Shown piece after piece: positions 1-51,664 of a stretch of DNA of 64,000 nt. Every line of letters begins with the position of its first letter. Position 1 is the stretch's first letter. The stretch is from Lepidodermella squamata (taxonomy: Eukaryota; Animalia; Gastrotricha), in assembly GCA_047495785.1 (NCBI GenBank), contig JBLDXI010000074.1, forward strand, positions 496,001 to 560,000. The letters are read 5' to 3'. The translations under genes were made by a program, and so were the position numbers. The notes below the pieces were generated by a model. That model worked only from the letters and a program-made list of their open reading frames with translations, was not told the DNA's origin and ran no database searches.

Positions 1-3000
1 CGTAGTAGTAGTGCTCTCGGTACTCGTCGAGGTAGTTTCAGGGGTCGTCGTGGTACTTTCTGTTGAGGTGGTCGTAGTCTCCGTGGTCGTCGTAGGGGTC
101 GAAGTGGAAGTCGATTCCGTAGAGGTAGTTGTGGTCTCTGTAGTCGTAGTCGACTCAGTAGTGGTGGTCGGAGTTGTGGTCTCAGTGGTTGTCGTGCTTT
201 CTGTCGTGGTCGAAGGCGTTGAAGTTGTAGTCGACTCTGTGGTAGTTGAAGAGGAGGTCGGATATGTAGACGTCAAAAGGCTAGGGCAATTCGGGCAAAT
301 CTCCATCAGCAGCTCCGGCGTAGGGTCATACCACTCGGTAACATTGGTCGAATTCGTCGCCGGGATGAAGTAAATCGGCTTGCTAGCCAGCGGTTGGACA
401 TAGCTCTTGTTGTACCCCTCGCCAAAGCCAATGACCACAACCGGAATGCCATGCGATTTCAGCTCACCAGCTTCTTCCATCGCGTCCTCCTGGCTTGACG
501 GGGTGCTGCCTGTCATCAGGACAACGAGAACAGGTGCCTTGCGACGGTGGCCCCTCTTCGGAGCCAACACCTGGTACCGAACAGCCTCCAGCGCATCTCC
601 CGCCTGCGATTCACTGCCGAGATCAGTTGTTGGGTAGTAACTCATCAAAGCCTGTCGCGATAACTCGTTCGAACTCGCGTTTTCGATCAAATACTTCGGG
701 ATAAACACAAAAGACGCGTATTCAATGACAGCAGTTCGAAGGTTCATGCAAGACGGCAGATGGTCGTTCAAAACGTGGTTCATCGTCGGCCGGCCAATAG
801 CGTTGTAGGTTGCGTTGTCGAAGTACGACCGATCGATAACGAAAATTATATCGACAGAACAGCAGTAGGTCACAGTTTGCGGGACCACGGCTACGACTGG
901 CGGTGCCGTAGTGCTGGTCGTCGTTGTTGAGGTTGACGTCGACGATGATGAGGTCAAGTTTTGCGAGCAGAAGCACGAAATCATCCAGTGTGCGATTTCG
1001 TCGCTGTTCGAATTCGCGTCGACCGCTTTGTACCTGTCGGGCGAACTGGCGAGGGATTTGTAGTAGTAAGAGTCGTACATGTTGCCGATGCCGATCATTG
1101 AAATGACACCGCCAGCCATGCGCAGGTTTTCAGCTTCTTGAATGGCGCGATTTTGGAAGTCGGGATTGAAGCAGGAGAACACGTAGACTTGGGTCGGGTT
1201 GTTCAAAGACCGGCTTTGAACATCTCGCAATACCTAGAAATGAAAGTATTTGAAAATCACCATATAAACGCTAAAAAATTCGACGCAAGTATTTCCGAAA
1301 AGCCTATTGGATTGATGAGATTCTTTTATCATTTCTCAAAGAGGCAGCAGTTATACATGCGTTCAAGCTATCTTCCGACCAACTGCAGAAATTCCATGAA
1401 GCAATGGCGAACTGGATCCGAACGCTCATTTAAAATAGGGCGCAATCTTCCAAGCTTAGTTTTTCCTTTAAATTGGAGCTGGTATCATTCAAGAAATGCC
1501 AGATGACTAGTTTGCGGTTTATATAAAGAATAAAATGGGGTTCCGATAACGTAGTCATTTTCTCCGCTTAAAATGGTCACTGGTGAAGTGCGTTAAATGA
1601 GCGGTCCTAAAATCGAACTTGGCAAAACCAAACCCTAACCAATCCATAACCCTGACCCGAACCTCACCCAAACCGCCAACTCCAATGCCTAGCCATCGTT
1701 TTGCCGAAAAACACAGTTCTATGAAAAAATTATGTATGAATGGTTGTTTTGTCTCTGAACCGCACAAAAACCCAACAAAATATTTTCTAAATTGTTTCGG
1801 TCGCTAGAAATTTATGGGTCTTCTTTTAGCGGAACCAAATTTGCCTGTTAGCGGAACCTAGTTTTAGAATTTTCAGTGGGCCTGAAACCACTTTTCGAAA
1901 CTTCCTAGGATGTCATGATTGATCAGCATAATTCAATATAAATCATCTTTAAATTCAGCGTAAAATTCTGTATATGACTCATTCTTCGCAACAGAATTCA
2001 CATTTTGCCTTAATTTCGTAGAAATATTCGAAAATCGACCTTTTGCTTATCGTAAATTAGGTTCCACAATATGGAGATTTGGTTCCGCTAAAAGATATTC
2101 TGGAAATTTATTTCCGAAAGCATCATAAAAAAAGAGTTCACGTAGATTCCGTTCAAAACCTATTTTGGCTTACGTAGTCTATCTTGAATTCTTGAAATGG
2201 ACTTTTAGCAAAATTAACTATGAAACTATGAAACCGCAATACATTGCGAAATAACCAAATATTAAAACAAACCTGATGGTTGACAGTTGAAAAAGCCTGA
2301 TCAATCGCATGGCTGTAGCCCAACTGGTCGCCGACCTTATACGCCCGCATAACATCCATCTGCTGCTGCGTCGAATGGAAATCGCCATAGTTATACCGAA
2401 CCTGCGCCCTCGATCCATACTCAACATAAGCAGTGCCCATCTGGTTACTATTGCCAAGTTGATTAGCAAAACTCGTCATAATCGGCTGGATGGCTTCGTT
2501 GAAACTCGCCTGGTTGAAGCAGGTCCGATCGAAGACGAACACCAAATCGGTAGATTGGCACATATTCGAAGGCGTTGTCGTTGTTGAAGTTGAAGTGGTT
2601 GAAGATTCAACTTCAACAGGATTCGCTACTGCAACGGGTACGAATTCAGTCGTAGTCGGCGAAGAGGTTGAAGTAGATTCGGTCGTAGTTGAAGTCAAGG
2701 TTGATTCCGTGGTTGTTGAAGTTGACGTAGATTCCGTTGTAGTAGAAGTTGAAGTCGGAGTCGACGTAGTCGTGGAAGTCGAAGTCGGGGTTGAAGTCGT
2801 AGTTGAAGTTGAGGTCGAAGTTGAAGTTGGGGTTGAGGTAGTTGTCGAGGTCGAAGTTGTTGAAAGGATAGAAGCAGCCGGGTACATGGTCGCAGCCATC
2901 CATTTGCCGATATCTGAGCAATTCGGGTTCGAAGTTGGAACGGCTCGGAATAGATCAGGCTGGCTGGCTAGGACTCGAAGGTACTCCGAGTTATAGGCTG

Positions 3001-6000
3001 AACCTAGGCCAAGAACTGAGATGATTCCGCCGGCGTTGCGAAGGTTTTCAGCCTCTTGGATGGCTTGGTTTTCGAAGTCGGGATTATGGCATGTGAAAAG
3101 GTAGACGTAGGTTGGGTTGTTGAGATTTCGGCTGTTGTAGTCACGCAGCACCTAAAATTATAGGAATTACATTAATAACATTCGAAATACGTTTCAATAA
3201 TGAACCGCTGTAAATGTGACTTTACATACGAATTTGAAAACATTTTCCTTGGAACCTCGAAAATAACGCTAATTATGTTTTTGATACTTCAGATTAAGAA
3301 AAAATTGTATTGAAAATCTTACATTGTGATTAACAGTGCGAAGGGCATCGCCTGTCATGGAACCCTGGCCGAGATCGTCGTTGCCAACCTGGTAGTACTG
3401 CATGTTATTGCGCACCTCGTCCTGCGTATCGAAATCGCGATAATTATACCTCACATTCGTCCTCTCAGCGTACTCAACATAGGCCGTATTAGGCTGGACG
3501 CAAGGGTCCATTTGCTCGGTCAAACACGTCATCAACGGCTGAACTTGCTGGTTGAAGGTCTCCTGGTTGAAGCACAGCCGGTCGTAGACGTAGACGGTAT
3601 CAGGCTGGGCACAGACTGGAACCCGAGTCGTAGTAGGCGTGCTCGTTGTAGTCGAGGTGGATGTCGACGTTGACGTCGAAGTTGAAGTCGGGGTTGAAGT
3701 CGTGGTCGAGGTTGAGGTCGAAGTCGAGGTTGGGGTTGAGGTAGTTGTCGAAGTTGAAGTTGAAGTGCTAGTCGAGGTTGAAGTTGAGGTGGATGTCGAA
3801 GTCGAAGTCGAAGTTGAAGTCGAGGTGCTAGTTTCAGTCGTAGTCGACGGTTCTTCCGCCAAAATTAGGAAAGTTGTTGTTTCATAGGGCGAAACCGTTA
3901 GAGGCAACGGCGTCATTCCCATAATCATCCAACTCGCGATTTGGCAGTGGTTCGTGTTGGTAGTTGGCACGGCTAGGAAGTAGCTTGGTTCGCTGGCTAA
4001 GACTCGTAGCATTTGCGGGTCGTAGGTGTCGCCGAAGCCCAGCACAGAGATGATGCCGCCGGATAGTCGTAGATTTTCGGCTTCTTGAATGGCTTGGTTT
4101 TCGAAGTCTGGGTTGTTGCAGGTGAATAGGAAGACATTCGTTGGATTGTTCAAATTTCGGCTGTAAACATCGCGCATAACCTTGAACAAAAAGTACACGA
4201 AAATTTTATAAAGTGATTACATAAAACTGTCCCGATTTCAAAATTGAATAGCAAAGCTCAAAAAATGCGGCGAAATTACGAATTTTGACAAAAAATTACT
4301 GAACTAAGATTGAAATTAGTTGAAATAATCAGCAAAGCAGGAATAAAAATTCAACGGAGTCATTATTTTTCAAACCGTCTGATGATTCATCGAGGTGCTC
4401 ACCAAAAATGTTAACCCTCCGTTATTTTTACGGAATCTTGTTCAGCACCTTCGAAAACCCCTAGATGTCGATCTCCAGAAATTTCCAACCCTTTAATTAT
4501 CTGTTGGCACAGCTTTGAAATTCTATTAAAATGTCCCCGCTTTGAAAACACTTCCTCGAGCCGATTTCTTTCAAAATTGATTTTTTCGCACGAGACGATC
4601 CGCTGGGTCTTGATTAGCAATTTGACTCTACCCCCGTTGCACCAGCCCACATGGTTGGACAGGTAAGTCGATTTGACCTAGTTTCAGACAAACCTATTTT
4701 AGACCTATATTTTATATTTTATCAGACGGTTTGAAAAATAATGACCCAACAGAGCTCCAAAAACCCGAAAAACAGCGATGATAGCCGAAAAAGATACCCT
4801 TGAATATTTATCACGAAAACAGCCAGAAATCTCGATCGGCATTCAAATTCAAATTTAAATTGTCAACTTACATCATTATTGACGGTTCGCAAAGCATCAT
4901 GCGTCTGCGAGCTGCCAGCCAAATTTTGATCGCCAACTTGATACCGGCGCATGTAATTCCTCGCATCTTGCGGCGTGTTGAAATCGTGGTAGCGATACCG
5001 AATATTCGTACCCTTGCCGTACTCGACATAGGCCGTATGCATAGCAACACACGGGTCCATCTGATCAGCCATGCAGGTCATGATAGGCTGGATCGATTGG
5101 TTGAAAGTCGCCTGGTCGTAGAAACAGCTTCGGTCATACACGAAAACAGTATCTGGCGCGGCACAAATCGCAGTAGGGGTGGATGTATACGTCGAAGTCG
5201 AAGTTGAGGTCGATGTTGAGGTAGAAGTAGATGTAGAATTTTCTGGTGGGGCTGCGAAAACGGGAGCGGCAACTGGTTGGTTATCGTAATTATCTCCGCA
5301 TTGCAGGATGTCCAACAGCCAATCACACGCGCCCTAAATTAGAAAATTGAGAAAAAATATATTAAAACTCGAAAAGCCCCGCTCAACGCTCAATTTGAGG
5401 GTCCATTGAGAATTTTTCAACACTAGAATTTTTCATAGCATGGCTTTTCAGGTTCCGAGATTTTCTAAAATCTCACAGATATCGCCATCATAGGAAATAT
5501 ATTTCCTTAATTAGTTTCCGCTAGGGTCTAGTTTCAAGGGTGAGGTTTTTTTAGCTAATAGGCCACAGGCGATAATAAGATCCCCGGAGGTCGTTTTCCG
5601 CTAGCAAGCTTTTTGAGATTAGTGCCTTCTGTTTCAGTGGATAGAGGACTAAGGTTTGAGGCTAAATGACATCAAGTTGAACTAATTAGAGCTTGGGAAA
5701 AATATCATGCGGCAAGCAAACGTTGGTTTTTTAACCTGGCCAATTCATAGGCGGATAATTTTAGCCAGATTTTGGGATTTCCAATCAATTTAGCAGATAT
5801 TTTGCGCTAAGAGCGGCCAGTTTAAGATTATACTTCACCCTCCGGATTCGATATCGATTTCAAGTATCGAATTTAGGAATCAGGGATTTTTTCGATATCA
5901 GCAGTCTGGGAAAGAAGCATTAAAAATTACCTTAAATACCTGAGGGTACTAGGTAGCTAAAATGACAATAAATCCAAGGTCGTGTACGGAACTACTATCA

Positions 6001-9000
6001 ATCGAGAAAGGAAAAATTGCCAATCGAAAACAACCAGAAAAATTAGCGCTGGAAACCCAATTTCAATTTATTTGTCCCCTTTTCGACTCAAATAATTGGA
6101 AAATTCGGCTTAATCGATTTTCTTTGGTCGCTCAATGTTCACAAAGTTCTATTAAAAACTCTCATGGGTTCAACTTTTCAAATTTCACTCGTTTCTGAAC
6201 ATCCTAAATTACTTAAAATGTGGCTTCTGAATTGCCAAATTTTTCAGGCCTTGGATATCAAAATTTCCTCTCACCTGAACATCGCTTTCATTGCGGACCG
6301 GGTAGTAGTGACCAGGCGACGAGGCGCAACTCTGGGCCACATGCTGGTCGTACTGATTGCCGAAGCCAATGACAATAACCGTCGCATTAGTCGCATGCTT
6401 CATTTTCTGCGACTCCATAACCGCCTCGTCGCAATTCGACGGCTGATCGCCCATCATCGTGATAACATAGGCCGGACTCTTCATCCGCCTGCCGTATTTA
6501 TCCGATAGCGCGTGTTTCCGGCACACGTTGTAAGCATCGGCCAAGTTCGACCCGTTGCCCATCTGCTGGCCGACCTGGTAGTATTCCATCGACTGGCGGG
6601 CGCCTTCGTTCGTCGGGAAGAACATGAATGGGAATCGCGTCATGGCTGCTGAGCTGTATTCGATGTAAGAAGCTCGGATATCGACGCATTTCTCGAGATT
6701 TCGGGAGACGTGCTGCATGATGGGCTTCGCTTGTTTGCCGAATTTCTCGTTCGTGAAGTAGCACCTGTAAATTTGAAAGAATAAATGAAGTTCTGATTTC
6801 AGCCTAAAACTCAATTTAGTAACATTTTGAATATTTTCTTCATCATGCTCAAGTTCTGATAAACAAAATAAGCCCAGTACCGGCTGTTTTGAAAGAATTC
6901 TTCATAATTATTTTAATTCCGATAACTCATCAAAATATTGCAAGTTCAAATTACCATGGCTATACCGTAAGCTGGTCTAACTTCGGACAAAAACGTGTTT
7001 TTCGGGCTTCGTTATTCGAGGTGAACGAATTTTGTGACGGGCTTTATGTCAAAAGATGCGCCTTGAAAAACTGAACATTCTAGTATCAACTCCAGTAAAC
7101 AAATAATTTTTCCCGTACAGGAAACCGTAAAGGAAAACTGGTCCGGCTAACTTCGGACACAACTGGGGTAATTTCGGACAGCTCAGTGTGAATATTTAGA
7201 TTGGGGGCCAAAGTTCACATTAAAGCGAGATAAAATTTGTGAGCAGATTTAAAGTAAAAAAAATTAAAAAAAAAACAAAATGCATGAGAGGGACTCGAAC
7301 CCTCGATCGTGAATTGTGCTCCCAACGCAGCTGGTGCTGTTCTCACTGAGATATGGAATTTAAAAAATGTCAAGGTCGATTGGCATCTTTTTAAATTCTT
7401 TATAGTTTGAAGCTGTCCGAAATTAGCCGGGACAAAATGGGTTTTCTAAAGCATTTCCTGATCAAAATTTTCGTTTAAAAACGGTTTTAACATAACAGCA
7501 TTACTAAATCGATGGCGCTCTATCATTTCCGCTTCTTTCCACCAAAAAATACCTACTTGGTGAAAAGTTAGCAATTTTGGGTCGCGGAACATGCCTGCGA
7601 AGAAGTTGAGCCATTCCTCGCATAGATATCCGTTTTTCATGTTTCAGGTGTCATTTGAAAGACAAGACTCAGGGCTATCTTCTGCATTTTGAACGGCCTC
7701 CATATTCGCCCGGGTTGTGGAGGAATTTAATTTCAAAGTCAAAAGTGTCCGAAGTTACCCCGTCCGAAATTATACCAGCTTACGGTATGCTATAAGTCTC
7801 ATAAGTAATGCAACAAGAATGATACAGTGAAAATGGCCACTTAGGAATGAGAGGAAATTTCCGATTTAGGACAAGGCTGATGACCAGCAATAAAACTAGT
7901 TAGTGAAAATACACAAAATTGGCCCAGCAGGCACAAAACCGAAAAAATAATCGATCGGGTATTTCCGGGTTTTATCGGGTTCAAACTTTTTCATAAAACA
8001 AAAGTTTAAATTCTTTAAAATTAAAAGAAATTCAGTAAAATAGAGGATGAACGATGCCAAATGCCCTTGAATTTTGAAAAATTCACACACAATTCCTTCA
8101 AAAAAGTGAACAGAAAAATTATGTCGAACTTACGGAAAATAACTTCAGAGAGTTGATTTTCCCAAAATTGAGTTTTTCGAATTACACTAGGATCTGAACT
8201 TATACCACCATGTCTAATCAATTGATCTCACGTAATTTGGGCTATCGGCGATATCGATTACAAGTATTCACAAATCGAATCGATTCACAAATCAATGATT
8301 TTTCCAATGTCAGCAGTTTTGGAAGCGAACAATCAATCTATTTGATGTACAAGGTACCTATAATCCCAAATTGAAAAATCCCTGGGTCACAGGGGGCATC
8401 GGAAACAAAAACGCCGAGATCGCAAAGAACCTTAAAAAAGTTGAGCTGCTTAAGTGACCCTTTCTTAACCACCAAATCTTTTTGATTTACCCGATGTAGA
8501 GCTTTATCTCAATTCTTCAAAGAATAAGACTGATCGTTATTTTAGAAGTGCTCAAATTTCTAAAAAACATTAGTATTCCAATTTCAAATTGAAAATGTAC
8601 CTGTCAATGATGAAAACTGTATCAGGCGGGTAGCAACACGGAGGTTGGCCACTGGGCTGTTGGCCTCCAACCAGCGGAACAGCACTCGAAGTTGTAGGGG
8701 TCGACGTAGTAGTAGTAGTACTAGTTGTAGTACTAGTAGGTGTACTAGTAGTAGTCGTAGTCGAAGTCGTACTCGTAGTGGTCGAAGTCGAGGTGCTGGT
8801 CGTGGCATTCGGGCAAGACGCGTTGTTCATCTGATCAGCCAAATTGTCGATAATCGAACTCGCGTTGTTGCCGAAATAGTCGCTGTGGTAGTACAGGTTG
8901 GGCGTCGTCGCAATCGCCCTCGCTTTCGTTTGGTCGTACGTGTTGCCGACGCCGATGAATGCGATCTTAGCGCCGTCCTCTTCGATTTTCGTCGATTCGG

Positions 9001-9673
9001 ACGTGATCTCGTCCTCGCCGTAAATTTCTGACCCGGCTAGAACGACGACATAGGTCGGCGCGGAGGTTCGATGACCTTTCGAAGGGTTCAGTACCTATAG
9101 ATAAGATTCATAAATTCGAAACGAGTCATCGCTACTGAAATTTCCCAATTAACTGTTAGAGTTTTAGTTGAAGATACATTTACATTAATTTTCTCTAAAT
9201 TTTCAAAATTTAAATTTCATTTTGCCAAATTTGCTCCGAGCAGGCAATTTTTAAATTCTAAATTTTGAAAAGCGAATTTTTGCAACAGAATTTGGGCGAA
9301 AGAAACTGACCTGATTTCGGACAACTTCCAGGGCTTCACCCAGGAGGGCAAAAGTGCCTAGATTCATGCCAGGCTGGTAATTGTGCATGTACTCGCGAGC
9401 AGCCGAGTCGGGCACGTGTTCATCGAGCGGCGCCCGCAAATTGACATAGGAACCATACTCGACGATGGCTACCCGAACATCGGCACATGACGCCAATTTG
9501 TCCGCCATTTGACTCATCATCGGCTTGACAACCGAATCGCAGCGCATTTTCGTGAAATAGTACCGATCAATCACGTAGATAATATCCACATCTGGGCAGT
9601 CGCATGTATTCGGCCCGGCTGAGGCCGATACTATAAAAAGAGCCAATATCAACCCAGCGCTTGATAAATTCAT
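1..9673 (-). CDS. Gene B: secreted multi-VWA protein with Thr/Ser-rich linkers (>=6 VWA), paralog of gene A; 3' end beyond window edge
   Basis: Exons (minus, frame-consistent GT-AG): 9673-9311, 9094-8601, 6764-6275, 5333-4872, 4180-3323, 3151-2273, 1233-<1 (open to edge, so absent from the ORF track). Signal peptide MNLSSAGLILALFIVSASA/GPNTC. Repeated VWA strand motifs (DIIYVIDR, RVAIVEYG, ISVLGFG, LASxP) alternate with T/S tracts. Last exon translates VLRDVQSRSLNNPT...CCSVDIIFVIDRSYF...IPVVVIGFG then a TTTES tract. Confidence 0.9.
1822..2095. mobile_element. MITE/foldback-like element, copy 1
   Basis: Perfect 19-bp inverted repeat TCTTTTAGCGGAACCAAAT (1822-1840) / 2077-2095; interior alignable to the copy at 38005-38270. 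Confidence 0.65.
4357..4747. mobile_element. Non-autonomous DNA transposon (MITE), possibly Sola2-like
   Basis: Perfect 25-bp TIR GTCATTATTTTTCAAACCGTCTGAT at 4359-4383 / 4721-4745; termini GAG...CCC; flanks AACG/AACA (imperfect 4-bp TSD). Superfamily assignment tentative. Confidence 0.7.
6965..7785. mobile_element. Tc1/mariner-pogo-type MITE with TA target duplication
   Basis: TIR CCGTAAGCTGGT(C/A)TAA(C/T)TTCGGAC at both ends (2 mismatches); TA at 6963-64 and 7786-87; internal copies of the AA(C/T)TTCGGAC motif near 7149, 7170, 7414 and 7746. Confidence 0.8.
7281..7356 (-). pseudogene. tRNA-derived / Pol III promoter-like segment inside the MITE
   Basis: Minus strand: degenerate A box (ATCTCAGTGAGAACAGC), B box/T arm GAGGGTTCGAGTCCCTC, followed by T-runs; no good cloverleaf. 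Confidence 0.5.
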
Positions 9674-24900: not shown

Positions 24901-27900
24901 CGGGGTGCCAGTTGTAACATCTGGCAGGGTGACCACAGTGGTCGTAGGTTCCGTAGTCGTGGTCGTGGTCGTAGGTTCCGTTGTAGAGACGGTAGTGGTT
25001 GGCTCAGTCGAAGTCGACGTTAAAGGTTCAGTTGTTAGCTCAACCGTTGTAGATTCAGTCGTGGTTCCTGGGGTCGAAGTCGTTGAAGTTGAGGTAGTGG
25101 TCGATGAAATCGTCATAGCAACCGGCAGCATGATATCAGCCATCCATTCTGCAATATCCTGCGAGGTTAGCCCGCCCGCATCCGCCGCAATGAAAAGGTC
25201 CGGTTCGTTGGCGAGAACTCGCAGATAATTGCGGTCGTAGTCCGACCCGAAGCCGATAACAGAAATGATGCCGCCGTTCATTCGCAACTGTTCCGCGGCG
25301 TTTATGGCGATATTCGCGAAGTCAGGGTTGTGGCATGAGAATAGGTAGACGTAGGTCGGGTTGTTCAAATCGCGGCTCTGCAAACTGCGCAGCAGCTAAA
25401 ATCAAATTAAAAAATTTTTTAGAATATTTTAATGATAACGTAAAAGTCTCGAATAGAACCGGACAAACTTCGGAATTCGCTTCTACTGTACTTTACCGAC
25501 TTGAATTTGGGTAACAAACTTTCCGAGGGAAGAAATGAGAAAAAACGTAACTAATACGCGCGACCACGACCTCTCTCTGATAAGCAAATCAAGCGTAGAA
25601 TGGCTGCTAATTCGGAATAGTTACCACTGCTATACTCAAGCATTTACACAGGATGTTTGCCTAGAGCAACGGAAGATCACTTTCTCAGTTATTTTTATTT
25701 TTGTAAGTCACGATAAGCTGAGTTATGCCCTGAGAAATGCCAATGGATTGACCCTGACCTTGAATGCGTTTTCGAACAGTGAGTGAGTTCCCGAGATGCC
25801 TCGTGGGACAACTCAGACTGGGACGTCAACCAAGAACTCATCTGAGATTGCCGAATCAATGCAGACGATGGCTTCGAGGACAACGAAATCACACGCATGA
25901 AAGCGCCCCTTCGCACCTTTCTTATATCACAAATTAATAAATTCAACCCCATCCTAGACACGATTGACAGCTTGGGTGCTTTTCGCCTTTCGCCCTGGGT
26001 GCTCGATTTGTCGGGGCAGAACCAGCTAAACTGTTTGGGGGTGGTGATCGAAGCTGCTTTCTTATCGATACATTTTATTTTTAATTCGAGTTACTTTTTA
26101 TCGCTCAGATTCAGTTCATCAGAATCTTTACAAATTCATACAACCTTTCAAACTGTCCGCGATCTGTACACGACTCTCATCACTTATATGGCGCAGCGCA
26201 TCACGGCAGCTCTCGAACCATCAGCTGCTTGACTTGGTCGAGGCAATTCACGCCGGGCTAACCACACAAGAAAAGACGCAACGACAAATCGCGGAGTTGC
26301 GAAACGCTGCTGAGAATTTGCAAATAGAAGCTGCTGCGAATCTGCCTGATTTTTTGGCTAATCCCGGAGATGCGAGCGAAGTGGCCACGCTAATTTGCAT
26401 CGCCTTTCAAATGGCTCCGCTGCAAGCAGGGATAAAATGAACATTCAGTTTGTCTGAATCATCGCAAATTGATGTAACCTTTTGAGCTGCCCCCGACTTG
26501 TATTCGTCCCTTACTACGTATATGTCGCAGCGCATAACGGGAGCTCTCTCGAACTTGATCGAGGCGATTCACGCCGGGCTGGCCGCTCAAGAAAAAACGC
26601 AGCGACTAATTTCGGAATTGGGAAACGCTGCAGCCGACCTAAAATCTTCTCTCGAAAATTTACAAAGCCAAGTTGCTCATACGAACTCTGCCATCGAGAA
26701 ATTGCAAGGCCAAGTGGCGAACATGAACTCTGCCCTCGAACGCTCACTGAAGCAGGGATAAAATGAACATTCAGTTTGTCTGAATCATCGCAAATTGATG
26801 TAACCTTTTGAGCTGCCCCCGACTTGTATTCGTCCCTTACTACGTATATGTCGCAGCGCATAACGGGAGCTCTCTCGAACTTGATCGAGGCGATTCACGC
26901 CGGGCTGGCCGCTCAAGAAAAAACGCAGCGACTAATTTCGGAATTGGGAAACGCTGCAGCCGACCTAAAATCTTCTCTCGAAAATTTACAAAGCCAAGTT
27001 GCTCATACGAACTCTGCCATCGAGAAATTGCAAGGCCAAGTGGCGAACATGAACTCTGCCCTCGAACGCTCACTGACCCAAGGCGCCGAGATGCGAACTG
27101 CCATAGCGGAGCTGAAGGCGGAGCGTTTGAAGCAACCTCGGCGGGAACCGTGGGCAAGGCGGAGGCTCTTCACGATTAAACGACTTCGGATAGCCTCTTG
27201 GCTGAAAAATAACTTGCTGGAACCGGGAACTAACTCTTGAGATTTTACATCATCACTGTTTTTTCTGTAAACTCATCGTTGCTCGAAACTCGGCAATTTT
27301 TGCGATTCTTTTATAATACCCTGCTGTTTTACCATCGCTTTTATTATTGAAACCTATGATGAGGTATGCAAATAAAAACAGGGGGTGAGGTAACTGGTCT
27401 CGCGAAACCGGGCCGTAAATTGTTTGCATGGGACGCCATTCGATGCCACCTTACCGACAGTGTCAAAAGCATGTTAGAAAAGGCTAAAATTGACACGGTT
27501 CTAGCTGATAGTTCTAGCTGGGTGCGCAAGCGGCAGACTTGGCCTGGAACAAGCCGTTCAAGGACGAGTTCCGAGATCAATACGATGAATACATGGCGCG
27601 AGAGGTGTACGAATACACCAAATCGGGCAATATGAACCCTCCCCCTCTGCATCTTGTTTGCCAGTGGTTGCTTAAAGCCCAGGAAGCTGATATGACTAAA
27701 ATTTGAGAGAATGGTGAGTTGGGAATAAATAGGAAAATAAAGACCGCACCCGATGTGAGGTGTGAAATCACCGCGTTTTTTGCTTTCTTCCAAGGAAAGA
27801 GGACAACAATAAAGATTTTTATGTTTTTGTTTTTGTTCAAAAAAATTAAGAATTTTTTTGAATATTTCAAAACTTCTCAAAACTTTTCAAAAATTCAAAC

Positions 27901-30900
27901 TTGAATAAAAATCCGATTTTTATACGAGAAAACATTTAATACAATTTTACTCACATTATTAGCGCTGTATAGAGCCGAGCTGATGACAGACCCGTTGCCT
28001 AGACTGTTGCCCAGCGTGTAATTCCGCATAAAAGCCTTGGCCGCATTCGAATTCGGAAAATCGTAGTAGTTGTAGCGAACAACCGACGACGCGCCGTACT
28101 CGATATAGGCCGTGCTGATGTAGACACAAGGCTCCAGCTCATTCGCCAAATCAGTCATAATCGGCTGAACATTCGCGTTGAAGCCATCCTGGTCGAAACA
28201 CGCCCGGTCGTAGATGTAAATCGTATCCGGCTGGTAGCAAATCGACACAGCGGTTGTAGTCGGAGATGTAGGACTCGTCGACTCAGTCGACGTGGCTGTC
28301 GAGGTCGAAGTTGCTGCCTCAGTTGTCACATCGGGTAAAATCGACGAGGTTTCGGTATTTTGAGTCGTTGACGGGGTGCTGGTCGATGGGCTCGAAAACG
28401 TCATCGCCTCAGGCAGCATAATCGCCTCCATCCAGGCAGCGATTTCGTCGCTGGTTGAATTAACCGTGTTGATATCAACAGCTCGGAATAACTGAGGCGA
28501 ATTCGCTAGAATATTGAGGTAGACCTTATCGTAGGTGTCGCCGAAACCGAGCAGCGAGATCACGCCGCCGTTCATTCGAAGCGTTTCCGCCTGCTCCATG
28601 GCTTTGTTCACAAAATCGGGGTTGTGGCATGTGAAAACGAACACGTAGGTCGGGTTGTCGAGGTCTTTGCTTTGAATGCTTCGCAAAATCTAAAAAAATT
28701 GAATAAAAAATTAGTGTTAGAAATGGAAATTTCGGATTTCGAGTAATCGGAAAATGTGTAGCTCAATCATTTCAATACGAAGCTCATTGTACAATTCATC
28801 TTCAAACAAAATTAGAGTGTTATCAAGCAGCTTGAGTGTTTCCCTTTCATCATAGATCAATCGATCAAAGCATATTAAACGGGAATTACTGGGGTGGAAT
28901 TTTTCACTGAAGACAAAATGCTCAAAGCGGGGGAAGGAATCATCAAAAATTTAGCACGTCTGATATATGGACTAGTTTTTAGTTGCTCATTTGCGTTAGC
29001 CATTTTTCGCGCAATAATTTTTACCAAGTTTGCACTATGCCACCGGCCCCGGCCTCAGCCGCAGCCGTTCACCATCAACAGATGCAGTACCTGCAGCCAC
29101 TCACCGCTCACTCCACCTGCTAACTAAGTTGAAGTACTGTTGGACAAAATCAAGCAGTTGCTGGCTGTCATTGTCGAAGCTTTTAACCGCGTTTAAGTTT
29201 CCTCGATGCTTTAAACTGCGATTAGGCGCGAGGCGAGAAGAGAAATACGAAGAGAATAAGAGCGAGCGAGATTAGTAAAACAAAATTTGATCGATGTTTC
29301 TGCTTGCTTTTTACTCAGGGCGGTTCAAGATTTGCTTTAGCTATCCGCGTACCGCGTTTTCAACGCTCGACCAAGCCGATCCGCTCGTGTTATTCGAATC
29401 TTTGACCCCATCGCGTCCCATCTCGCGAATTGACGTTTCGCCGTCGTCCATCGATTCATATATTTCCGCGAAAAAACCGCAGTCCGTGGTTCGAATCCTG
29501 TCGATCATTTCACTAGCGCTAGCCTATCTCGAGTACTACACAAACGTCTACAATTCCAACAATTTCAAATTCGATGCTCTCGAATGCAATTGCCAAGAAT
29601 GCAACTCAGCTGCTGTAAGTCCCGAATATACCCGAAAAAGGTTCACATATTAATCTACAAAGTAGCTTTACTGAACGAAAAATATCAACGCAACGAGTGG
29701 AACGCGACTGCTTCAACTGATTATGAGTGATCAAACATTATTGAAAGTCAACTCGCCCTGAATGAAGGGTGACGGAAATTTCTACAGAAAAATAGTGCGT
29801 TATTAATTACTATAGCGTATGCATATTGGGCATGCAAGCCCGTTAAGCCTGAAATGGCCAGCTTTCATGTCAGGCAACGTCACCACTGCTCCCCCGCTGG
29901 TCGAGGTAAACCAGGAGAATGATCTGATGGTCTATGCTCAGGGCGATAAAGAGAATAATCCACGATAATATGCTCAGACCGATTAGTTGGCCAAAGATTT
30001 GTTTTGACTATTGTTTTGACTTCTCGACACTGCCTGATCTGACAACGCCTCTCTGCACGATTCGTTTTTTTACATGCACCTTTTTCCACGTAGAGCTCTC
30101 AACATTGGGATTATGCTCGATAAATAAATAAATAAATAAATAAGAGCTCGTTAACTTCCGATCATATCGACGCAACATAGGCGCAATTGATCCATTTATA
30201 TTCTGGCAGGTACATTCACTGCCAATCTCGTTTCTATAACTTGACCCAATACTGTTTTTAAATCTTACAGCGAACGAGAGTTCAAGTTGAGAAACACTGG
30301 AAAGCAGTTCATGCAGCGATCTCAGAAATCGAGATCCTATCGATCAATTCACTCTCGAGCACATCTCGAGTACTACACCAAAATTTACAATTCGAACAAT
30401 TTTGAATTCGATGCTCTCGAATGCAATAGCCAAGAATGCAACTCAGCTGCGGCAAGTTTTGATCAACCGCACATCTTTCAGCCCGTTTCATCGTACTCAG
30501 ATCTGGTCTGCGAGTGTTGCCTTTCCAAGTGTGATCCATCTATTTCTCTTGCTGATGACCAGCTCGCCAGTAGCTATACCGTTTGATATTACATCGATTT
30601 CATCTACCATTTTCTTGTATCCGCTCGTTTCCAGTGAGTTAGTTTAAATATGGAAAATTACGACTACATTGGACCTCTAGGGTCTGGATCCTTCGGCAAT
30701 GGGAGTTTGCAGCGGAACAAATTGTTTTCCCGAAACCAAACTACACTAACAAAACCGACATTTGGTCTATGTCTGTATGATGTTTTCTTTAGATCTTTTA
30801 CGAATTTCTCTTTCGCCGAGTATAAAAATCCTTTGAAAATACGAGAACTGGAGCGCGTCATACTAAAGAATTAGATAACCTAGCCGAGAAGAACGAGCAA

Positions 30901-33900
30901 AATTATTCGAGGGCCTTTGATGACTTCCAGCGATTGATGTGCGAGAAAAATTGAAAATTAAAAATTTTCTGCATTTTCCCGTCACTTTACGACGGCGACG
31001 CCGTGGCGGTTAATTGAGATCCGAAGACCCGGCAGACCCGGCAAAAGTAGATGTTCCAATCGGTATGTGGTATTTTATCACTGTAGGGTTGGATTTCATC
31101 AGGATGCTATTTTTCAGAATTCCTGAGCTATATTTTCGAACTGCCTGTCTCCCGTTTTAAGGGTATCAAAGGCCCTTGGCGTAAAATTGTCACTTCGTTG
31201 GAACAAAATGGCTCTGACTACCGGCATCTTGTTAAATTGAATGAAACTGCTGGAGAGAACGAACATGAAACACCCCCAACCCACCTCCAAATTTCGGCTA
31301 ACCACCCCCAAAATGACTAGTTTTTGGCTATTTATTTAGGTCCATTTTTACCCCAATTGGCGACTACCCACCCCCAATTTCTAAAGGCTAGAAAAACCCT
31401 TGACTCAGATTATCAAGATCATCTTCACTCGGGAAATAAATACGCTAGACACTCACCCCGTAGTTGGCGCTGCTAAACGCTTGGGAAAGGCTCGAACCAG
31501 TCGTAGGACCCAGCGTCGGGCCAACCGTATAGTTCAGCATAAACTGCTTCGCCGCATTCGAATTCGGGAAATCGTAGTACGTGTACCGAATACTCGACCA
31601 GCTCTGGTACTCAATGTAAGCCGTGCTGATTTGAACGCAAGGCTCCAGAGTCTGCGACAGGCTCGTCATAATCGGCTGAACCTGAGCGTTGAACGCAGCC
31701 TGGTTGAAACAACCCCGGTCGTAGATGAAAATCACATCGGGCTGGGCGCAAATTGGAACAGCGGGAGTAGTCGAGGTACTACTGCTAGTCGAGCTTGGGG
31801 TCGTGAAATCCGGTACCGTACTTGGAACCGTAACAGTCGAGGTTGAGGTTGAAGTCGAACTATCAGTCGAAGTTCCGGTATTTGTTGTAGTACTAGGCGT
31901 TGTTGTCGACGGGCTCGATAAAGTCAAGGCTTCAGGCAGCATAATTTTTTTCATCCAATTCGCGATTTCGCCACTAGTCGAGTCGATTGTATTGATATCA
32001 ACGGCTCGGAATAGCTCAGGCGAATTAGCTAGGATGTTGAGGTAGTAACTCTGGTAGTTGGGGCCAAAGCCGAGGATGGAGATAACGCCGCCGTTCATTC
32101 GCAACAGTTCAGCCTGCTCCATGGCTTTGTTTTGGAAATCGGGATTGTGGCACGTGAAGGCATAGACGAACGTCGGGTTGTTGAGATCTTTCGTCTGGAT
32201 GCTTCGCAATATCTAAAAAAATTGGAGAAACAATTAGTCAAACCGACATTATCTTAACAATTTAGGTTCCTGCTTCTCCCTTTGGTCGGAGAAGGCGCGC
32301 AGGATGAAACACGTGACATTAGGATAGATGTAAAAGCTAAGCATATCATTCGTTCTTATTGCACACGTAACTGACTTCTTATTCGGTAAGTCATTTTCTT
32401 GCGTCAACAAGTCGGTCAACTTGAAGACGGTCAACAAGTCTCGTGATAGCACTGAATTATACAGGGCGTTCGCGTAGTAATACTCTGCTAAAAATAGCGT
32501 TGCTACTTTTTGCATTCGTTTTAGCCTTTTTGTAGCTATTTTTAGCTCACCCAGAGTATTATTACGCGAACGCCCTGTACTTATTTTTGCGAATATACCG
32601 AAACGAAAGAGTAAATTAGAGAAACTCACGCCGTAATTTGCATTGCTGAAAGCCTGATCTAAAGCCGATCCGGTGCCCAAAGCTGGTCCAACCGTGTAAT
32701 TCAGCATAAACTGCTTCGCCGCATTTGAAGTCGTGAAATCATAGTACGTATACCTCGTACTAGCCCACTGGGCATACTCGACATAGGCCGTGCTGATTTG
32801 AACGCACGGTTCAAGGGATTCGGATAGGCTCGTCATAATCGGCTGAACTTGCGCGTTGAAGGTCGCCTGATCGAAACAGCCCCGGTCGTAGATGAACACA
32901 ACATCGGGCTGGGCGCAAACTGGTTCAGATGGGGTGGTGGAATCCGGCTCTGGAGTCAAGCTAGTAGTTGAAGTCGAAGCCGTAGTTAAAGTAGTCGTAG
33001 TAGTTGATGTTGAGGTCGAAGTCGTAGTCGAGGTCGAAGTCGTTGTCGAAGTCGATGGAGAAGTTGGCGAAGGTTCAATCATAGTCGTACTTCCATCGGG
33101 TAGAGTTGTACCCTGTGGGGTCGTATAATCCGGTAAGCCGGGCGTAGTCGTCCTCGGATGGCCGGTTGCAATGATATCAATTAGGTAACTGGCCGCATCT
33201 TGAATTTCACCGTCATTTCGCACCTGTGTGAAATACCCGGGCGATGATGCGAGGCTTGCGGCGTTTGTTGTGTTGTATCGAGTGCCGAAGCCAATGACGA
33301 CGATTTTCGCGTCTGTTCGCTTGAGCAGCGACGCTTGAGTCGCGGCATCAGCCCGGTCGGACGGGTTCGAACCTAGGAAGGTGACGACGTACGTCGGGCT
33401 CGATGGACGACGGCCAAATTTGACTGTCAGCGCCTGGAATTAAAAATAAAGCGAAAATTTAAAAACATGAACCTTCCATGCAATCATGACGTTTTTCGAA
33501 ATGCTCGCTAAAACATTTGACACAGCAAAGTAGAAAAATACTCTTATTTCTGACGCTAAATTAAAAAAAATGGATACTCGAATGCTAATAAATTCTAAAT
33601 GAATGAATAAAATTGGAAGAAATGCAGCTGAAACGGGTAGAATATCGGGAATCCTCGATATTCTACCTCACCTAGGATATTTCGGGGGTTTTTGATGAAT
33701 TTTTTAGGAGCGGTTTAGAGCGGTCTAGGTCTAGGTTAGCTCCGGTTAGCTAGCGATTCATTCCGGTCTAGAAAATATACCGTGCGATTTGGGCTTTTAT
33801 AAATTTCCCAGTTAAATTCAACATCTGAATCACTCAAAACTCGTTTTCAAATTTCAAATTTTGAGATGACTTTCATTTTTCCTCAAATCCTCTCTAAAAT

Positions 33901-36900
33901 TGGCCCTTCTAAATCGGACCTTCACATTAAAATTCGACCGCGATGGGGCGCGGGACTACGCCAAAACAAATGACACCAAAATAAAAGGCACCACAACAGC
34001 CAAACTTTTTGATTGTTGTGCAACGAGAACAATCGTTTTTCTTTAGCTGTTTCGGAGTAGTCCCGTCCCAGCTGCGCAATTTATGAGCTATAATAAGCGT
34101 ATAGGTGAAATCATTTGGCCAGAGACCAGATTTTGACTATCCATGGAAATTCAAGTTAACAGCAATATTGAGGACAATTTCATCATTAAAACTGCTAAAT
34201 TTTGAGCGGGCTGAAATTTGAGGATTGAAAAATTTCATCAAAATTTAAAATTTTAATATTCAACGGTAAAAGATGTTGTTTTAATTTACCTGGGATCGGG
34301 TAATGCGGAAAGCGTCGCCCACATCCGAACCAGAGCCCATACGCGGTCCAACTTTGTACAGCTCGAGCGATTTACGGGCATCTTCCGGCTTCGTGAAAAA
34401 GCTGAACGGAAACCGCAGAAAACCAGTCGACGTAAATTCGATATACGCAACTTGAATGTCGATGCAAGAATTCAACTTCCGGCCTAGATTCGCCAAAATC
34501 GGCTTAGCCTGTCGGTCGAAAATTTCCGAATTCACGAAATAGCCGCGATCGAATAGGAAAACAACATCGGGCGAGAAGCACTCATCAGTCGACGAAGTTG
34601 TAGTCGAGCTGCCGGCATCAGGCAACGGGCAAGCGGCTGAATTGAGGGCATCTGTCAAATTAACCGTGATATCGCGCAGGCCGCTTCCGAAATAGTCCGT
34701 GTTGAAGTAGAGATCTGGCGAACTGACGGCTTGTTTCGCCAGCGATTCGTCGTACTGCGAACCGACGCCGATGAAAGCGATGCGGATGTTAGATTCCTTG
34801 AGTTCGGTGGCTTCGTTCACGAACTCGTTAGGGCCGTACATGGTCGAGCCGGTGAAAATGATGACGTAGGTCTGGGCTGATGGTCGATGGCCCAAGCTCG
34901 GATTCAGAACCTAAAAATTGAAAAAAATTCTCAATATTAATTTAATAATTCACGGATAAAATTGATTAGAATTTTGTCATTTTGAAATTTTCGACATTTT
35001 TCCAATTTTCATGTAAAAAGTCATTTACAAAATCGTTGTAATTCGTAAATACATAATTGATAGGCGAGAACGAAGTAGCACGGCAATTAACTACCGCAAG
35101 ACAAAGCTCTTCACTCTCTCGATAGTGTCGCGTCTCGCGTCCCTTTCGACTACCGACTACTTTTCATACGCTCCCTCCAATCTCCGAAAAATCACTTCTC
35201 GCACCAACGAGTAAATTATTGATAAACTTTTTCATTTGTTTAGCGCAACCACTCGTGGTCAATTGATGCTTCACGCGTGGCTTTGGATCGGCACGCACTA
35301 CTGGAAAGCAATGGCCTTGGGATCGGAAACAGTCAACAACGAGGGTAAACCACCAATTGGGCAGACCATCAATATCACCGGCGTCAGAATGTCCAAAGTA
35401 AAACCAGGGTTACAAAAAGCTTGCCAGCTCCAAACCGACAACGAGATTTGGTTCTCCTTAAAATCCAGGTGGGAGATTACCGCGCAACTTTTGCGTCCTC
35501 ATCCGCCACCAACGCCGCAGCTCATCACCGTTGGCTGGTGTACTGATCGGACATGAGCCATGATACTTTTATTTGAAGTGAGCTTTGAAATCTCACAGAG
35601 AGTCGATCGTGGAGTCCATAGGGTCGATATTAAATCGACATGCGAGCCACGATCGACCTGTTAGCCACAAAGTAGTTTCCAAAGAAACCTTCATACAGTG
35701 GAATGGCCCTAATCCCGCTAACGGCTACCGAAAGCTCCAACGATAAGGCAGTTATACGCTACCAGAAGAAACTAGTTTCCCTATGAATCGGAAAACTCTT
35801 CCCAAATTTTCCCCGAGTGTGTATGATGCAATGGGAAATGGGAAAACGAATTCTTAGAGCAGATAACTAAGGCGGGAACCTAAAAATTATCATTTTAAGC
35901 TCATTTTTAGGATTGGGAAGTCGCTATTTCCCAACAATCTTACCGCTTCGCGGTGAAATATCGAACTGCTGTTTCCCCGAAAATTCCCCACAAAATGTGG
36001 GTTTGGAGGCCCAAAATTTCCCACCATGATTGATGGAACTCTACCAGCCCTGGACATGACTTTCTGTCTCTAAATTCTCCTAAATAGCTGAATTCGCCAT
36101 ATAAGTCAGATTTCAGAACTATTGCAGACCAAACCAAGCTCAAATATGGCGAAATTCCTTTAAGCTCACATATACAATGAAAGCAAAATGTTCCCGATCA
36201 ACCCGCCAATCTAAATACCTGCCCCTAAATTTTGGCTCCTACAACTTTTGATCTCCTTGAGAAAGAAATTCCGAGGTAACACAAAAATATCCAGGTTTCC
36301 TCGAGTCAAAAAATTCCCCAATATTCCCCAAAAAAGTTAAATGACGGCTTTGCTAATGGCCTCCCAGAATTTTGATGAATCAATTTTGGTATTATTGAGC
36401 CATTTTCCCAACTTTAACTTTCATTAGATTGTAGTAATCAGTTAATTAAGAAAGTTGGCTAAAAAATAATAGTAACTTTCAGACTCATTTGCCGTGAGTA
36501 TTAGGCTCAACACGTAACGTAACAAATTCTTGAAAGCATAATACTAAAAAATAAATTGAAAAATGACATGAATTTTCGCAAACAAAATCTCTTCTAAAAC
36601 TGAATATTTGAAAATTTACCTGGTCTTTAATGACTTCCAGGCCTTCGCCAAGCAGAGCAAAGGTGCCAAGGCTCTCGCCAACGCCATAACTCTTCATGTA
36701 AGCAACAGCGCGATCCGTCGGGTTGTGCTCGCTCAAATCCGACCGCAAATTGACGTAGGCGCCGGTTTCGACGAAAGCCACGCGAACATCAGCACAGGCA
36801 CTGAGCCGCCCGGCAATGCCAGCCAAAATCGGCCGGATAATCGTGCCATAACGCAGGCTCGTAAAATAGTACCGGTCTATCAGGAAGACCAGGTCAAGGT

Positions 36901-36979
36901 CCGGGCATTGGCAGGTATTAGGCCCGGCCGCCACCGAGCTGACGACGAGAAGTGCCAGCAGTACGGTGGATAGATGCAT
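9928..36979 (-). CDS. Gene A: Pif/BMSP-like secreted matrix protein, 9 VWA + T/S linkers + chitin-binding type-2 (CBM14) modules + LamG/ConA-like domain (~2680 aa)
   Basis: Exons (minus): 36979-36620, 34910-34290, 33433-32630, 32212-31457, 28689-27955, 25395-24610, 22656-21940, 19212-17983, 15876-14315, 13074-12840, 10167-9928; all GT-AG and in frame. Signal peptide MHLSTVLLALLVVSSVAA. CBM14 motifs NPNDCHSFYQC..CPFGTYF..C and CAEFFTC..CCPQGTGFD..C (~15135-14570). LamG motifs LLYLPFE, WNQVCLVY, FYGLIDSV. Confidence 0.9.
11275..11556 (+). pseudogene. Ulp1/SENP-like cysteine protease C-terminal fragment (transposon-associated type)
   Basis: Frame not in the ORF track: TIDFFACPKQHNGSDCGFHLVTNLAESLHGRDPATVEYDVEQLRPW...MRFP; QxNGSDCG catalytic-Cys motif starts at 11350; upstream His/Asp half not found. 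Confidence 0.65.
13620..13981 (+). mobile_element. Tc1-family transposon 3' remnant
   Basis: PAYSPDLSPI (SPDLNPIE-like), frameshift/deletion, then PRTVPELHEAVTKIWSEI..LYDSMPRRMAAVIAAKGGPIDY* (stop 13830). Right TIR ...TTTTGTCCAGTAGTG followed by TA at 13982-83; left TIR not seen. Confidence 0.85.
15228..15365 (-). repeat. 63-bp (21-aa) tandem repeat in gene A linker
   Basis: GSTNTVLPDATAPEQPSSTLPD / GSTNTVLPDTTPPEQPSSTLPD. Confidence 0.85.
16330..16445 (+). pseudogene. Short second copy of the LicD-like gene fragment
   Basis: DKDTPAPHIHCLYLEWTER then (shifted) FFVHLLREFLPHF aligns with GQDTPAPHIPCLYLEWPER..FSVQLLREFPTHF at ~22770-22880. Confidence 0.65.
16600..17350 (+). mobile_element. Heavily decayed LINE (CR1/L2-like) ORF2 3' remnant
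   Basis: Fragments AYSAIVPSQQYRRVWH and NTERFSWMSAVSRYWNIL resemble post-RT LINE motifs; many stops. Confidence 0.35.
20028..21039 (+). pseudogene. Decayed unidentified gene fragment, antisense in intron
   Basis: The 20028 frame reads on past a single stop at 20334; candidate 52-nt GT-AG intron 20543-20594; basic C-terminus PRKKRQRKN. Confidence 0.3.
22750..23420 (+). pseudogene. LicD/fukutin-family nucleotidyltransferase-fold pseudogene fragment
   Basis: Removing a 56-nt GC-AG intron (22917-22972) gives PCYGTLLGFRRESDLIPFDDDIDIMV, the GTLLG..R....IP(W/F)DDDxD signature; stop at 23061; later WP and VYPL remnants. Confidence 0.75.
26424..27076 (+). repeat. 326-bp tandem duplication, apparently exact, within a coiled-coil pseudogene
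   Basis: 26424-26749 repeated at 26750-27075 (ORF pairs offset by 326); older diverged copy at ~26110-26325. Confidence 0.9.
27405..27695 (+). mobile_element. pogo/Tigger (DDE_1) transposase remnant
   Basis: RKLFAWDAIRCHLTDSVK; then, across frameshifts, IVLAGC and QAADLAWNKPFKDEFRDQYDEYM..YTKSGNMNPP..VCQWLLKA. Confidence 0.8.
29526..30450 (+). repeat. Dispersed 88-bp direct repeat (29526-29613 and 30363-30450), exon-like
   Basis: Both encode LEYYTxxYNSNNFxFDALECNxQECNSA and are followed by a donor-like GTAAGT/GCAAGT. Confidence 0.8.
29770..30142 (+). mobile_element. Decayed LINE 3' end with (TAAA)5 tail
   Basis: (TAAA)n at 30121-30142; weak upstream FYRKIVR / RAIKRII fragments. Confidence 0.35.
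33946..34069. mobile_element. Small MITE-like inverted repeat element
   Basis: GGGCGCGGGACTACGCCAAAACA ... TGTTTCGGAGTAGTCCCGTCCC, imperfect ~22-bp inverted repeats. Confidence 0.5.
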
Positions 36980-51496: not shown

Positions 51497-51664
51497 AGTA
51501 AAAAATTAAACAAGGGTAGGCACAATAGGGTTAAGACACATCGATTTACATCATGTAATAACCAAAAATTAAAAAACCTAAATAAGGAGAAAATACAGCA
51601 AAATTGATCAATTATTCGAGAAAGCGCTGAAATTCGAAAGAGAAAAAATGGAAGAACGAAAAAA

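Follow-up and report, generated by a model that had tools for sequence, protein, structure and literature searches.

A cysteine pair at the former metal site of VWA domains in Lepidodermella squamata: probably an additional structural disulfide of one subclade within a MIDAS-less family

What becomes of the old binding site of a VWA domain after the residues of its metal ion-dependent adhesion site (MIDAS) have gone? This question is raised by a 64-kb stretch of DNA from Lepidodermella squamata (contig JBLDXI010000074.1, positions 496,001-560,000; this whole stretch is called the window hereafter), in which two genes arranged in tandem, A and B, encode long series of VWA domains, seven of them with a cysteine at each of two positions of the former site. 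A first-pass annotation, made from the letters of this DNA, had proposed that a disulfide staples the former cation site, giving a metal-independent and possibly redox-sensitive VWA subtype. Our analysis indicates that the two cysteines come and go together, that they probably bond to each other within the domain, and that the loss of the metal site is a different and wider matter. The two genes are the following:

9928..36979, minus strand: gene A; ATG at 36979; signal peptide, nine VWA domains (A1-A9), Thr/Ser-rich linkers, CBM_14 and a split LamG-like tail
1..9673, minus strand: gene B; ATG at 9673; signal peptide and at least six VWA domains (B1-B6); the gene leaves the window at position 1

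The minus strand was translated from stop to stop, and all six frames were scanned with a hidden Markov model (HMM) of the family. Together these gave exactly 15 VWA domains, the number that had been counted before, and all of them fall on the minus strand within 1-36988. The family profile has 192 positions and was built from two single-exon domains plus exon pieces entered as separate rows; the residue numbers used throughout (4, 17, 41, 120 and so on) are positions of this HMM. As read from the translation, both proteins open with a signal-peptide-like sequence, and Thr/Ser-rich linkers connect their neighbouring VWA domains. The exon chain of gene A was resolved only partly below about 14300. 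The Pfam VWA model (PF00092, curated cut-off 23.8 bits) recognises A8 with 56.3 bits, B2 with 44.4 and the C-terminal half of A1 with 41.4, and reaches 130 bits on P0001, a protein of the orthologous gene described below; single halves of split domains often fall below Pfam detection.

Direct reading of the 15 domains found DxSxS in none of them and TDG in none, as the first-pass annotation had stated. Loop 1, the place of the first motif, follows the form D(R/A)xxF and never holds both serines, being DRYYF, DRGYF, DRGCF, DRGCF, DRACF, DRYTF, DRTCF, DRIYF and DAAYF in A1 to A9, and DRYYF, DRCYF, DRSCF, DRLCF, DRTCF and DRSYF in B1 to B6. Position 120, where the Asp of TDG should stand, is Cys in 7 of the 15 domains, with TCHNPD in A3, A4 and B4, SCHNPD in A5, TCWNPD in A7, TCNNPD in B3 and SCFNPD in B5; in the other eight (A1, A2, A6, A8, A9, B1, B2 and B6) it is Gly. 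Exactly the same seven domains have Cys at position 17, the fourth residue of loop 1 (DRxCF). The two cysteines thus stand where DxSxS would have its fourth residue and TDG its Asp, and the tally is seven domains with both, eight with neither and none mixed, which is the co-variation that had first drawn attention to this locus. The loss of both cysteines in A6 was likewise read correctly. Two further recurrent cysteines, Cys4 and Cys41, are present in all window domains, with the exception of B5, which has no Cys41. The positions of the two sites, together with those of A6, B2 and A8, are given here:

32873..32887, minus strand: A3 loop 1, DRGCF; Cys17 codon 32876-32878
32141..32158, minus strand: A3 beta4 end, FTCHNP; Cys120 codon 32150-32152
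31706..31720, minus strand: A4 loop 1, DRGCF; Cys17 codon 31709-31711
28618..28635, minus strand: A4 beta4 end, FTCHNP; Cys120 codon 28627-28629; intron 28690-31456 lies between it and loop 1
28195..28209, minus strand: A5 loop 1, DRACF; Cys17 codon 28198-28200
25324..25341, minus strand: A5 beta4 end, FSCHNP; Cys120 codon 25333-25335
24853..24867, minus strand: A6 loop 1, DRYTF; Thr17, no Cys; on the same exon as Cys120 of A5
22585..22602, minus strand: A6 beta4 end, FVGVSP; Gly120, no Cys; on the same exon as Cys17 of A7
22183..22197, minus strand: A7 loop 1, DRTCF; Cys17 codon 22186-22188
19141..19158, minus strand: A7 beta4 end, FTCWNP; Cys120 codon 19150-19152
5121..5135, minus strand: B3 loop 1, DRSCF; Cys17 codon 5124-5126
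4109..4126, minus strand: B3 beta4 end, FTCNNP; Cys120 codon 4118-4120
3569..3583, minus strand: B4 loop 1, DRLCF; Cys17 codon 3572-3574
3080..3097, minus strand: B4 beta4 end, FTCHNP; Cys120 codon 3089-3091
2516..2530, minus strand: B5 loop 1, DRTCF; Cys17 codon 2519-2521; the sole window domain without Cys41
1162..1179, minus strand: B5 beta4 end, FSCFNP; Cys120 codon 1171-1173
6245..6772, minus strand: B2 main exon; Cys16 and Gly120, with further Cys at HMM positions 96, 126 and 160
18325..18891, minus strand: A8, complete one-exon VWA domain of the Tyr17/Gly120 type (DRIYF, FLGNDP); Pfam VWA 56.3 bits

The two sites are mostly encoded by separate exons: a phase-0 GT..AG intron lies between the N-terminal and the C-terminal half, and hence between the sites, of 12 of the 15 domains. 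A typical exon comprises the C-half of one VWA domain, then a linker and then the N-half of the domain that follows. A8 and B6 each occupy a single exon. B2 has no intron at the usual place and carries instead a phase-2 intron inside loop 1 (GAC AG/gt...ag/G TGC), where DR/CYF joins an exon ending near 8601 (8601-8617) to the main exon (6763-6772); its DRCYF, with the Cys one residue earlier as previously noticed, is therefore present only after splicing. The junction predicted for A4, 31457/28689, which skips 2767 bases and reads CT..AC on the plus strand, occurs in a spliced contig of 1046 bases from the public run X2, and gene A is therefore transcribed and spliced as predicted. This run covers only exons of the window, and the loose end of its spliced contig reads into the next predicted exon.

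Within these shared exons the cysteine state switches: Cys120 of A5 and the Cys-less loop 1 of A6 lie on one exon, and the Cys-less beta4 end of A6 and Cys17 of A7 lie on the next. The coupling therefore follows the folded domain, not the exon. This observation argues against an alternative in which both cysteines arose on the stem of one subclade and were merely copied by tandem duplication, standing as free thiols or taking part in interdomain or interchain cross-links instead of being bonded together, an alternative whose other merits are weighed below.

Two of the introns have peculiarities of their own. The A5 intron holds a 326-bp tandem duplication (26424-27076) with two copies that are 100% identical, which could be explained by very recent duplication or by faulty assembly; plus-strand open reading frames (ORFs) across it resemble a coiled coil. 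For the A4 intron, the DNA run X1 contains, besides the form seen in the window, contigs that skip 494 bp and 1181 bp (29260-29755 and 29808-30990), which looks like a second haplotype with deletions in this intron.

How widespread is the cysteine pair? Relatives were sought by an exhaustive profile search of 1.84 billion representative proteins, the best 150 of which were examined. Seven of them are true relatives (P0001, P0011, P0020, P0046, P0050, P0069 and P0108), all from metagenome or Logan assemblies, with 95-204 bits per domain against the family profile and with Cys4, Cys41 and a D/E-R-x-x-F loop in common. The next-best matches are named VWA proteins of molluscs (Nucella, Octopus and Lymnaea), which reach at most 69 bits per domain and have an ordinary DxSxS and TDG. 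These best 150 proteins contain 592 full-length VWA domains, where column 120 of the HMM is Asp in 173; Cys17 occurs in two domains, both of this family and both with Cys120 as well, and a Cys at either position occurs in 0 of the other 590, vertebrate collagen VI-like domains included.

One contig of a metagenome from the European Nucleotide Archive (ENA), L001, encodes P0001 and P0011 and turned out to be a syntenic, short-intron ortholog of gene A with eight VWA domains (D1-D8), which shares with gene A the Glu/Lys-rich neighbour gene upstream. Its domains D3 to D6 have Cys17/Cys120, as FQRSCF with FLCQTP, MEHACF with FLCQTP, IERSCF with FLCYNP and FEISCF with FLCRTP, and D1, D2, D7 and D8 have Tyr17/Gly120. 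In D3 to D6 even the first Asp of the old DxSxS motif has been lost, and the identity between these domains and the Cys domains of the window is only about 40-50%. A Logan contig from a third organism, L002, has a C-half with Cys120 followed by a complete, A6-like domain without either cysteine (ERFYF, FLHNNP). Finally, the metagenome that gave L001 also contains a paralog, L003, and its two domains do not have the Cys17/Cys120 pair. Its product is a protein of 1411 residues, with a long, acidic, Ser/Thr-rich head in front of two MIDAS-less VWA domains.

Other searches did not widen this circle. A word-indexed protein search with a 416-residue exon gave no match, probably because words from the Thr/Ser-rich linker swamped the candidates; when the family alignment or the Cys domain of P0011 was used, only P0069 and P0011 itself were returned and the family was not enlarged. 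Scans of metagenomes of the Joint Genome Institute (JGI) yielded no confirmed relative.

Covariation across homologs had been named beforehand as a check, and the homologs do covary: four domains of L001 have both cysteines and four have neither, and the A6-like domain of L002 has neither, a pattern that rests on one to three events. Over the 36 complete or paired domains of the window, L001, L002 and L003, both cysteines are found in 11 and a single one at the exact columns in 0, so the idea that homologs might commonly carry just one of the two finds no instance there. Beside this tally stand two near-misses, Cys16 in B2 and Cys118 in L003. The latter was considered as a counter-example and rejected, since this lone Cys lies two residues deeper in beta4, at a place in the core taken by Phe in A8.

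In trees of the N-halves and of the C-halves, the eight window domains of the LNNPT subclass form one clade, and so do the fourteen that result when the relatives are included (support 95/94 and 98/98 for the C-halves, 85/94 and 80/82 for the N-halves). Of the complete domains of this clade, both cysteines occur in 11 and neither in two, without a mixed case; Cys17 is present in 11 of 13 and Cys120 in 12 of 14, with the same domains as exceptions. The naive chance of a 7/8 split without a mixed domain is 1/6435, a figure that overstates the case because the seven Cys domains are tandem duplicates within one clade, and the two losses, if independent, would strike the same two domains with a chance of 1/78. 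Both cysteines are invariant in all Cys-type domains of the two species despite the low identity between them, and positions nearby vary (H, W, N, F, Q, Y, R or S at 121; D, E or Q at 14). Where the pair is absent, the replacements differ, with Thr17/Gly120 in A6 and Tyr17/His120 in the L002 domain.

The next question is whether the two positions could meet in the folded domain. The Cys-type fold was modelled with AlphaFold2 (AF2) on a homologous domain that is naturally unspliced, P0001:138-336, using an alignment of 120 rows (mean predicted local distance difference test, pLDDT, 93.9; predicted template modelling score, pTM, 0.91), and the Tyr17/Gly120 domain A8 of the window gave a model with the same layout (pLDDT 93.7). 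Both models have the VWA fold, a Rossmann-like alpha/beta arrangement with a six-stranded sheet, and a Foldseek search with the first one returned collagen VI alpha3 N2, PTMP1, integrin alpha1, vWF A3 and TRAP with template modelling (TM) scores of 0.7-0.78. In the VWA fold beta1, beta2 and beta4 run parallel, with beta1 between the other two. In the P0001 model these strands span residues 10-18, 49-57 and 119-127. Cys4 (residue 7) and Cys41 (residue 46) are each placed three residues ahead of the start of beta1 and beta2, respectively, Cys17 (residue 20) in a short helical turn, two residues beyond where beta1 ends, and Cys120 (residue 125) in the last turn of beta4.

According to the models, then, Cys17 and Cys120 share one edge of the sheet, and the Cys4/Cys41 pair is distant from them, at the opposite edge. 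The first-pass annotation had placed both loops on one face of the domain, and the models agree; they also leave Cys17 and Cys120 away from the other conserved cysteines, with which they might otherwise have paired. The sheet is about nine residues (some 30 Å) high and has two cysteines at either edge, and the only intradomain pairings within reach are 4-41 and 17-120. A Cys17-Cys120 disulfide within the domain is consequently the likeliest pairing on the modelled fold, and we regard it as probable.

Further cysteines of the family show similar habits. A second N-terminal Cys (position 2 or 5, in a CxC or CC start) co-occurs with a Cys near 188 in A1, A9, B1, B6 and in D1 and D8 of L001, which fits either the classic N-to-C-terminal disulfide of VWA domains or a bond to a neighbouring domain. 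Only in B3 and B4, a Cys33 in helix alpha1 ('MTC') co-occurs with a Cys176/177 before the last helix ('NHC' or 'PNC'), and this pair may staple alpha1 to the C-terminal helix. It is encoded on these exon pieces:

3908-4180 and 4872-5174, minus strand: B3, Cys33-Cys176/177 pair
2879-3151 and 3323-3622, minus strand: B4, Cys33-Cys176/177 pair

Both sets, at places that the fold should bring together, support the view that cysteines of this family generally come as bonded pairs.

The case for a bond has to be set against several points that weigh on the other side. The Cys domains form a single clade, and only one to three independent events therefore back the coupling; on the sequences, one gain followed by one or two paired losses may fit as well as one gain after A6 had split off, and the inner branches of the LNNPT clade, including the places of A6 and the L002 domain, are without resolution in the trees. 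B2 has a lone Cys16 with Gly120, and one domain of L003 has its lone Cys118 in beta4 and no Cys in loop 1. Cysteine counts are odd in B1, B2, B5 and B6, which leaves some cysteines without an obvious intradomain partner. This particular family of VWA domains is known from only three or four organisms. Lastly, the predicted bond is inferred from the positions of strands in a model.

Some of these points are also what speaks for simple co-inheritance of two unbonded cysteines, namely the single clade with its unresolved inner branches and the odd counts, by which some cysteines must pair outside their own domain or stay free; to them may be added that both sites lie on the exposed top face in the AF2 models. 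Nevertheless, co-inheritance would have to accommodate the joint loss of both cysteines in A6 (Thr/Gly) and in the L002 domain (Tyr/His), each time with other replacements, and the retention of both in 11 of 11 complete Cys domains across some 50-60% divergence, in addition to a cysteine state that follows the domain. Moreover, two adjacent, exposed free thiols in a secreted protein are expected to oxidise to a disulfide. We consider co-inheritance without a bond rather unlikely, and a disulfide between Cys17 and Cys120 remains the preferred reading.

If the cysteines are bonded, did the bond replace the metal? Here the earlier proposal of a staple at the former cation site has to be divided: its disulfide is favoured by the same-edge position of the sites and by their co-occurrence, and its replacement of the metal is not, as the MIDAS has been lost in all 15 domains. 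The domains of the window and of the relatives that have no cysteine pair are equally MIDAS-less; metal independence would therefore be a trait of the whole family and not of the Cys subtype. The pair took the place of a Tyr17/Gly120 contact, and not of a metal. Tyr17/Gly120 is found in A1, A2, A8, A9, B1, B2 and B6 and in five domains of the relatives.

The cysteines could, on the other hand, have brought in another metal, with Cys17 and Cys120 joining His121 and Asp14 in a thiolate site for Zn or Cu in place of the Mg/Mn of the MIDAS. A His does stand beside Cys120 in four of the seven Cys domains of the window, within (T/S)CHNPD, and Asp14 is present in every window domain. However, the residue at 121 varies, with H, W, N or F among the Cys domains of the window against Q, Q, Y and R among those of the ortholog, which moreover have Q or E instead of Asp14. 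Because no third or fourth ligand is conserved, a thiolate metal site was rejected, and we find it barely credible.

The sequence of events that we propose starts from an ancestral family that would already have been without the MIDAS metal site, with Tyr17 in loop 1 and Gly120 at the end of beta4. In the LNNPT subclade, Tyr17/Gly120 would have become Cys17/Cys120, and the resulting disulfide would fasten the loop between beta1 and alpha1 to the beta4 end, on the face that once bound metal, with a second predicted bond, Cys4-Cys41, at the opposite edge of the sheet. The presumed effect is a fixed and more rigid top face, independent of metal, in the middle domains of the array. Genes A and B would encode secreted matrix proteins, as suggested by the signal peptide, the string of VWA domains and the Thr/Ser-rich linkers, to which gene A adds CBM_14 and a LamG-like tail. 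A disulfide that is regulated instead, being allosteric or, as the first-pass annotation had suggested, redox-sensitive, and switching the top face between two states, has in its favour only that this face moves in integrin I domains; with its Thr/Ser-rich linkers and CBM_14, the protein looks like a structural component of a matrix, and regulation strikes us as highly improbable. The most probable view of the Cys pair is accordingly a modest one: a structural variant, in which one subclade of a VWA family devoid of MIDAS has an extra structural disulfide, rather than a new kind of domain.

Which known proteins are built in a similar way? After the C-half of A9, on the same strand and in the same open frame, gene A continues with a Thr/Ser/Pro-rich sequence and with CBM_14 modules, after which comes the part with a weak match to Laminin_G_3, on one exon:

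14947..15111, minus strand: CBM_14 (peritrophin-A chitin-binding), the best-scoring part of gene A for this module; two stretches, Pfam PF01607, E 5.7e-11
12843..12998, minus strand: weakly similar to Laminin_G_3, within the split LamG-like tail; Pfam PF13385, E 0.003-0.004, 18 bits against a cut-off of 27.6

The combination of VWA, CBM_14 and laminin-G is that of the Pif/BMSP shell-matrix proteins of molluscs (PMC11291548). The order is the same, with a signal peptide, one or more N-terminal VWA domains, CBM_14 (in gene A downstream of A9, in the same strand and frame) and, with a match below the cut-off here, a putative LamG-type tail, and BMSP has tandem VWA domains too. The differences are also clear. 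The VWA domain of mollusc Pif-type proteins is drawn with a DXSXS MIDAS motif in PMC6907788, versus 0 of 15 window domains; the best named mollusc VWA scores no more than 69 bits per domain, well under the true relatives; up to nine VWA domains occur per gene here, as in gene A; and the host is probably not a mollusc. The 2024 survey of Pif/BMSP proteins (PMC11291548) mentions neither cysteines nor MIDAS. A minimal Pif-like layout was met in P0108, an ENA metagenome protein of 632 amino acids with a single VWA domain (DRSSV, Gly120), CBM_14 and LamG_3, in which Laminin_G_3 reaches 24.2 bits against the same cut-off.

By sequence, the best match in the PDB is the N-terminal VWA array of collagen VI alpha3, which resembles the genes described here in its long tandem series of extracellular VWA domains, and domains of collagen VI alpha3 and vWF are among the best fold matches. 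Many VWA domains of the collagen VI alpha3 and vWF A1/A3 type have degenerate metal sites and act without metal. In the collagen VI alpha3 and vWF A-domains the known disulfide links the two termini, at the bottom of the fold. The second-best PDB match by sequence is PTMP1 (4cn8/4cn9; E 1.7e-24, TM 0.76), a protein of the mussel byssus matrix with two VWA domains. Like the products of genes A and B it is an invertebrate extracellular matrix protein, but its MIDAS is occupied by metal, according to the title of entry 4cn9, and it has neither CBM_14 nor LamG nor the Cys17/Cys120 pair.

Disulfides have been engineered as locks into integrin I domains. These man-made bonds freeze one conformation and are placed around helix alpha7, not across the metal site. 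The idea of freezing loops or helices by a disulfide is common to both cases, whereas the bond predicted here is natural and the metal site is absent. The limited set of literature searched contained no description of a disulfide bridging a former MIDAS site. If the bond is real, these would be natural VWA domains in which two loops of the former metal site are held covalently, in contrast to metal-dependent I domains. The locus offers a natural comparison set for this, with A4 and A6, which differ at both sites, and A8, which represents the Tyr/Gly state.

The Cys pair in itself is a local structural variant of a very common domain. The wider interest lies in the finding of the VWA, CBM_14 and, putatively, LamG layout of mollusc shell proteins, with up to nine VWA domains, in a poorly sampled animal lineage, which bears on the origin of the shell-matrix toolkit. 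A far bolder reading would make of Cys17-Cys120 a natural class of VWA domain, whose covalent clamp took over the structural role of the MIDAS cation and switches the ligand face, mechanically or by redox state, in the chitin-associated matrix of a non-mollusc spiralian, within a Pif/BMSP-like family that predates the mollusc shell proteins or is independent of them; taken as a whole, we hold this to be decidedly improbable.

Directly upstream of gene A, at 38556-40968 on the minus strand, there is a Glu/Lys/Ala-rich gene with a weak zf-PARP match. A similar Glu/Lys/Ala-rich gene stands upstream of the ortholog in metagenome contigs (L001, 2-1021; L004), and the surroundings of gene A are conserved between species.

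The rest of the window holds other genes. The minus strand has zinc-finger ORFs within 43529-52528, at 43529-44557, 45018-47567, 48075-49544, 50349-51413 and possibly 51665-52528, which are counted here as ORFs and may be separate genes or exons of fewer genes. Their repeated module consists of a C2H2 finger and an 'HG(A/T)CPKKxCPKCxKxFLPxHxxRHxC' motif, Pfam having been run on one of these ORFs only. Two tandem, paralogous, single-exon genes follow on the same strand, at 59326-61521 and 61806-63983; the first has ankyrin repeats and a SOCS box according to Pfam, and the second is clearly similar to it in sequence.

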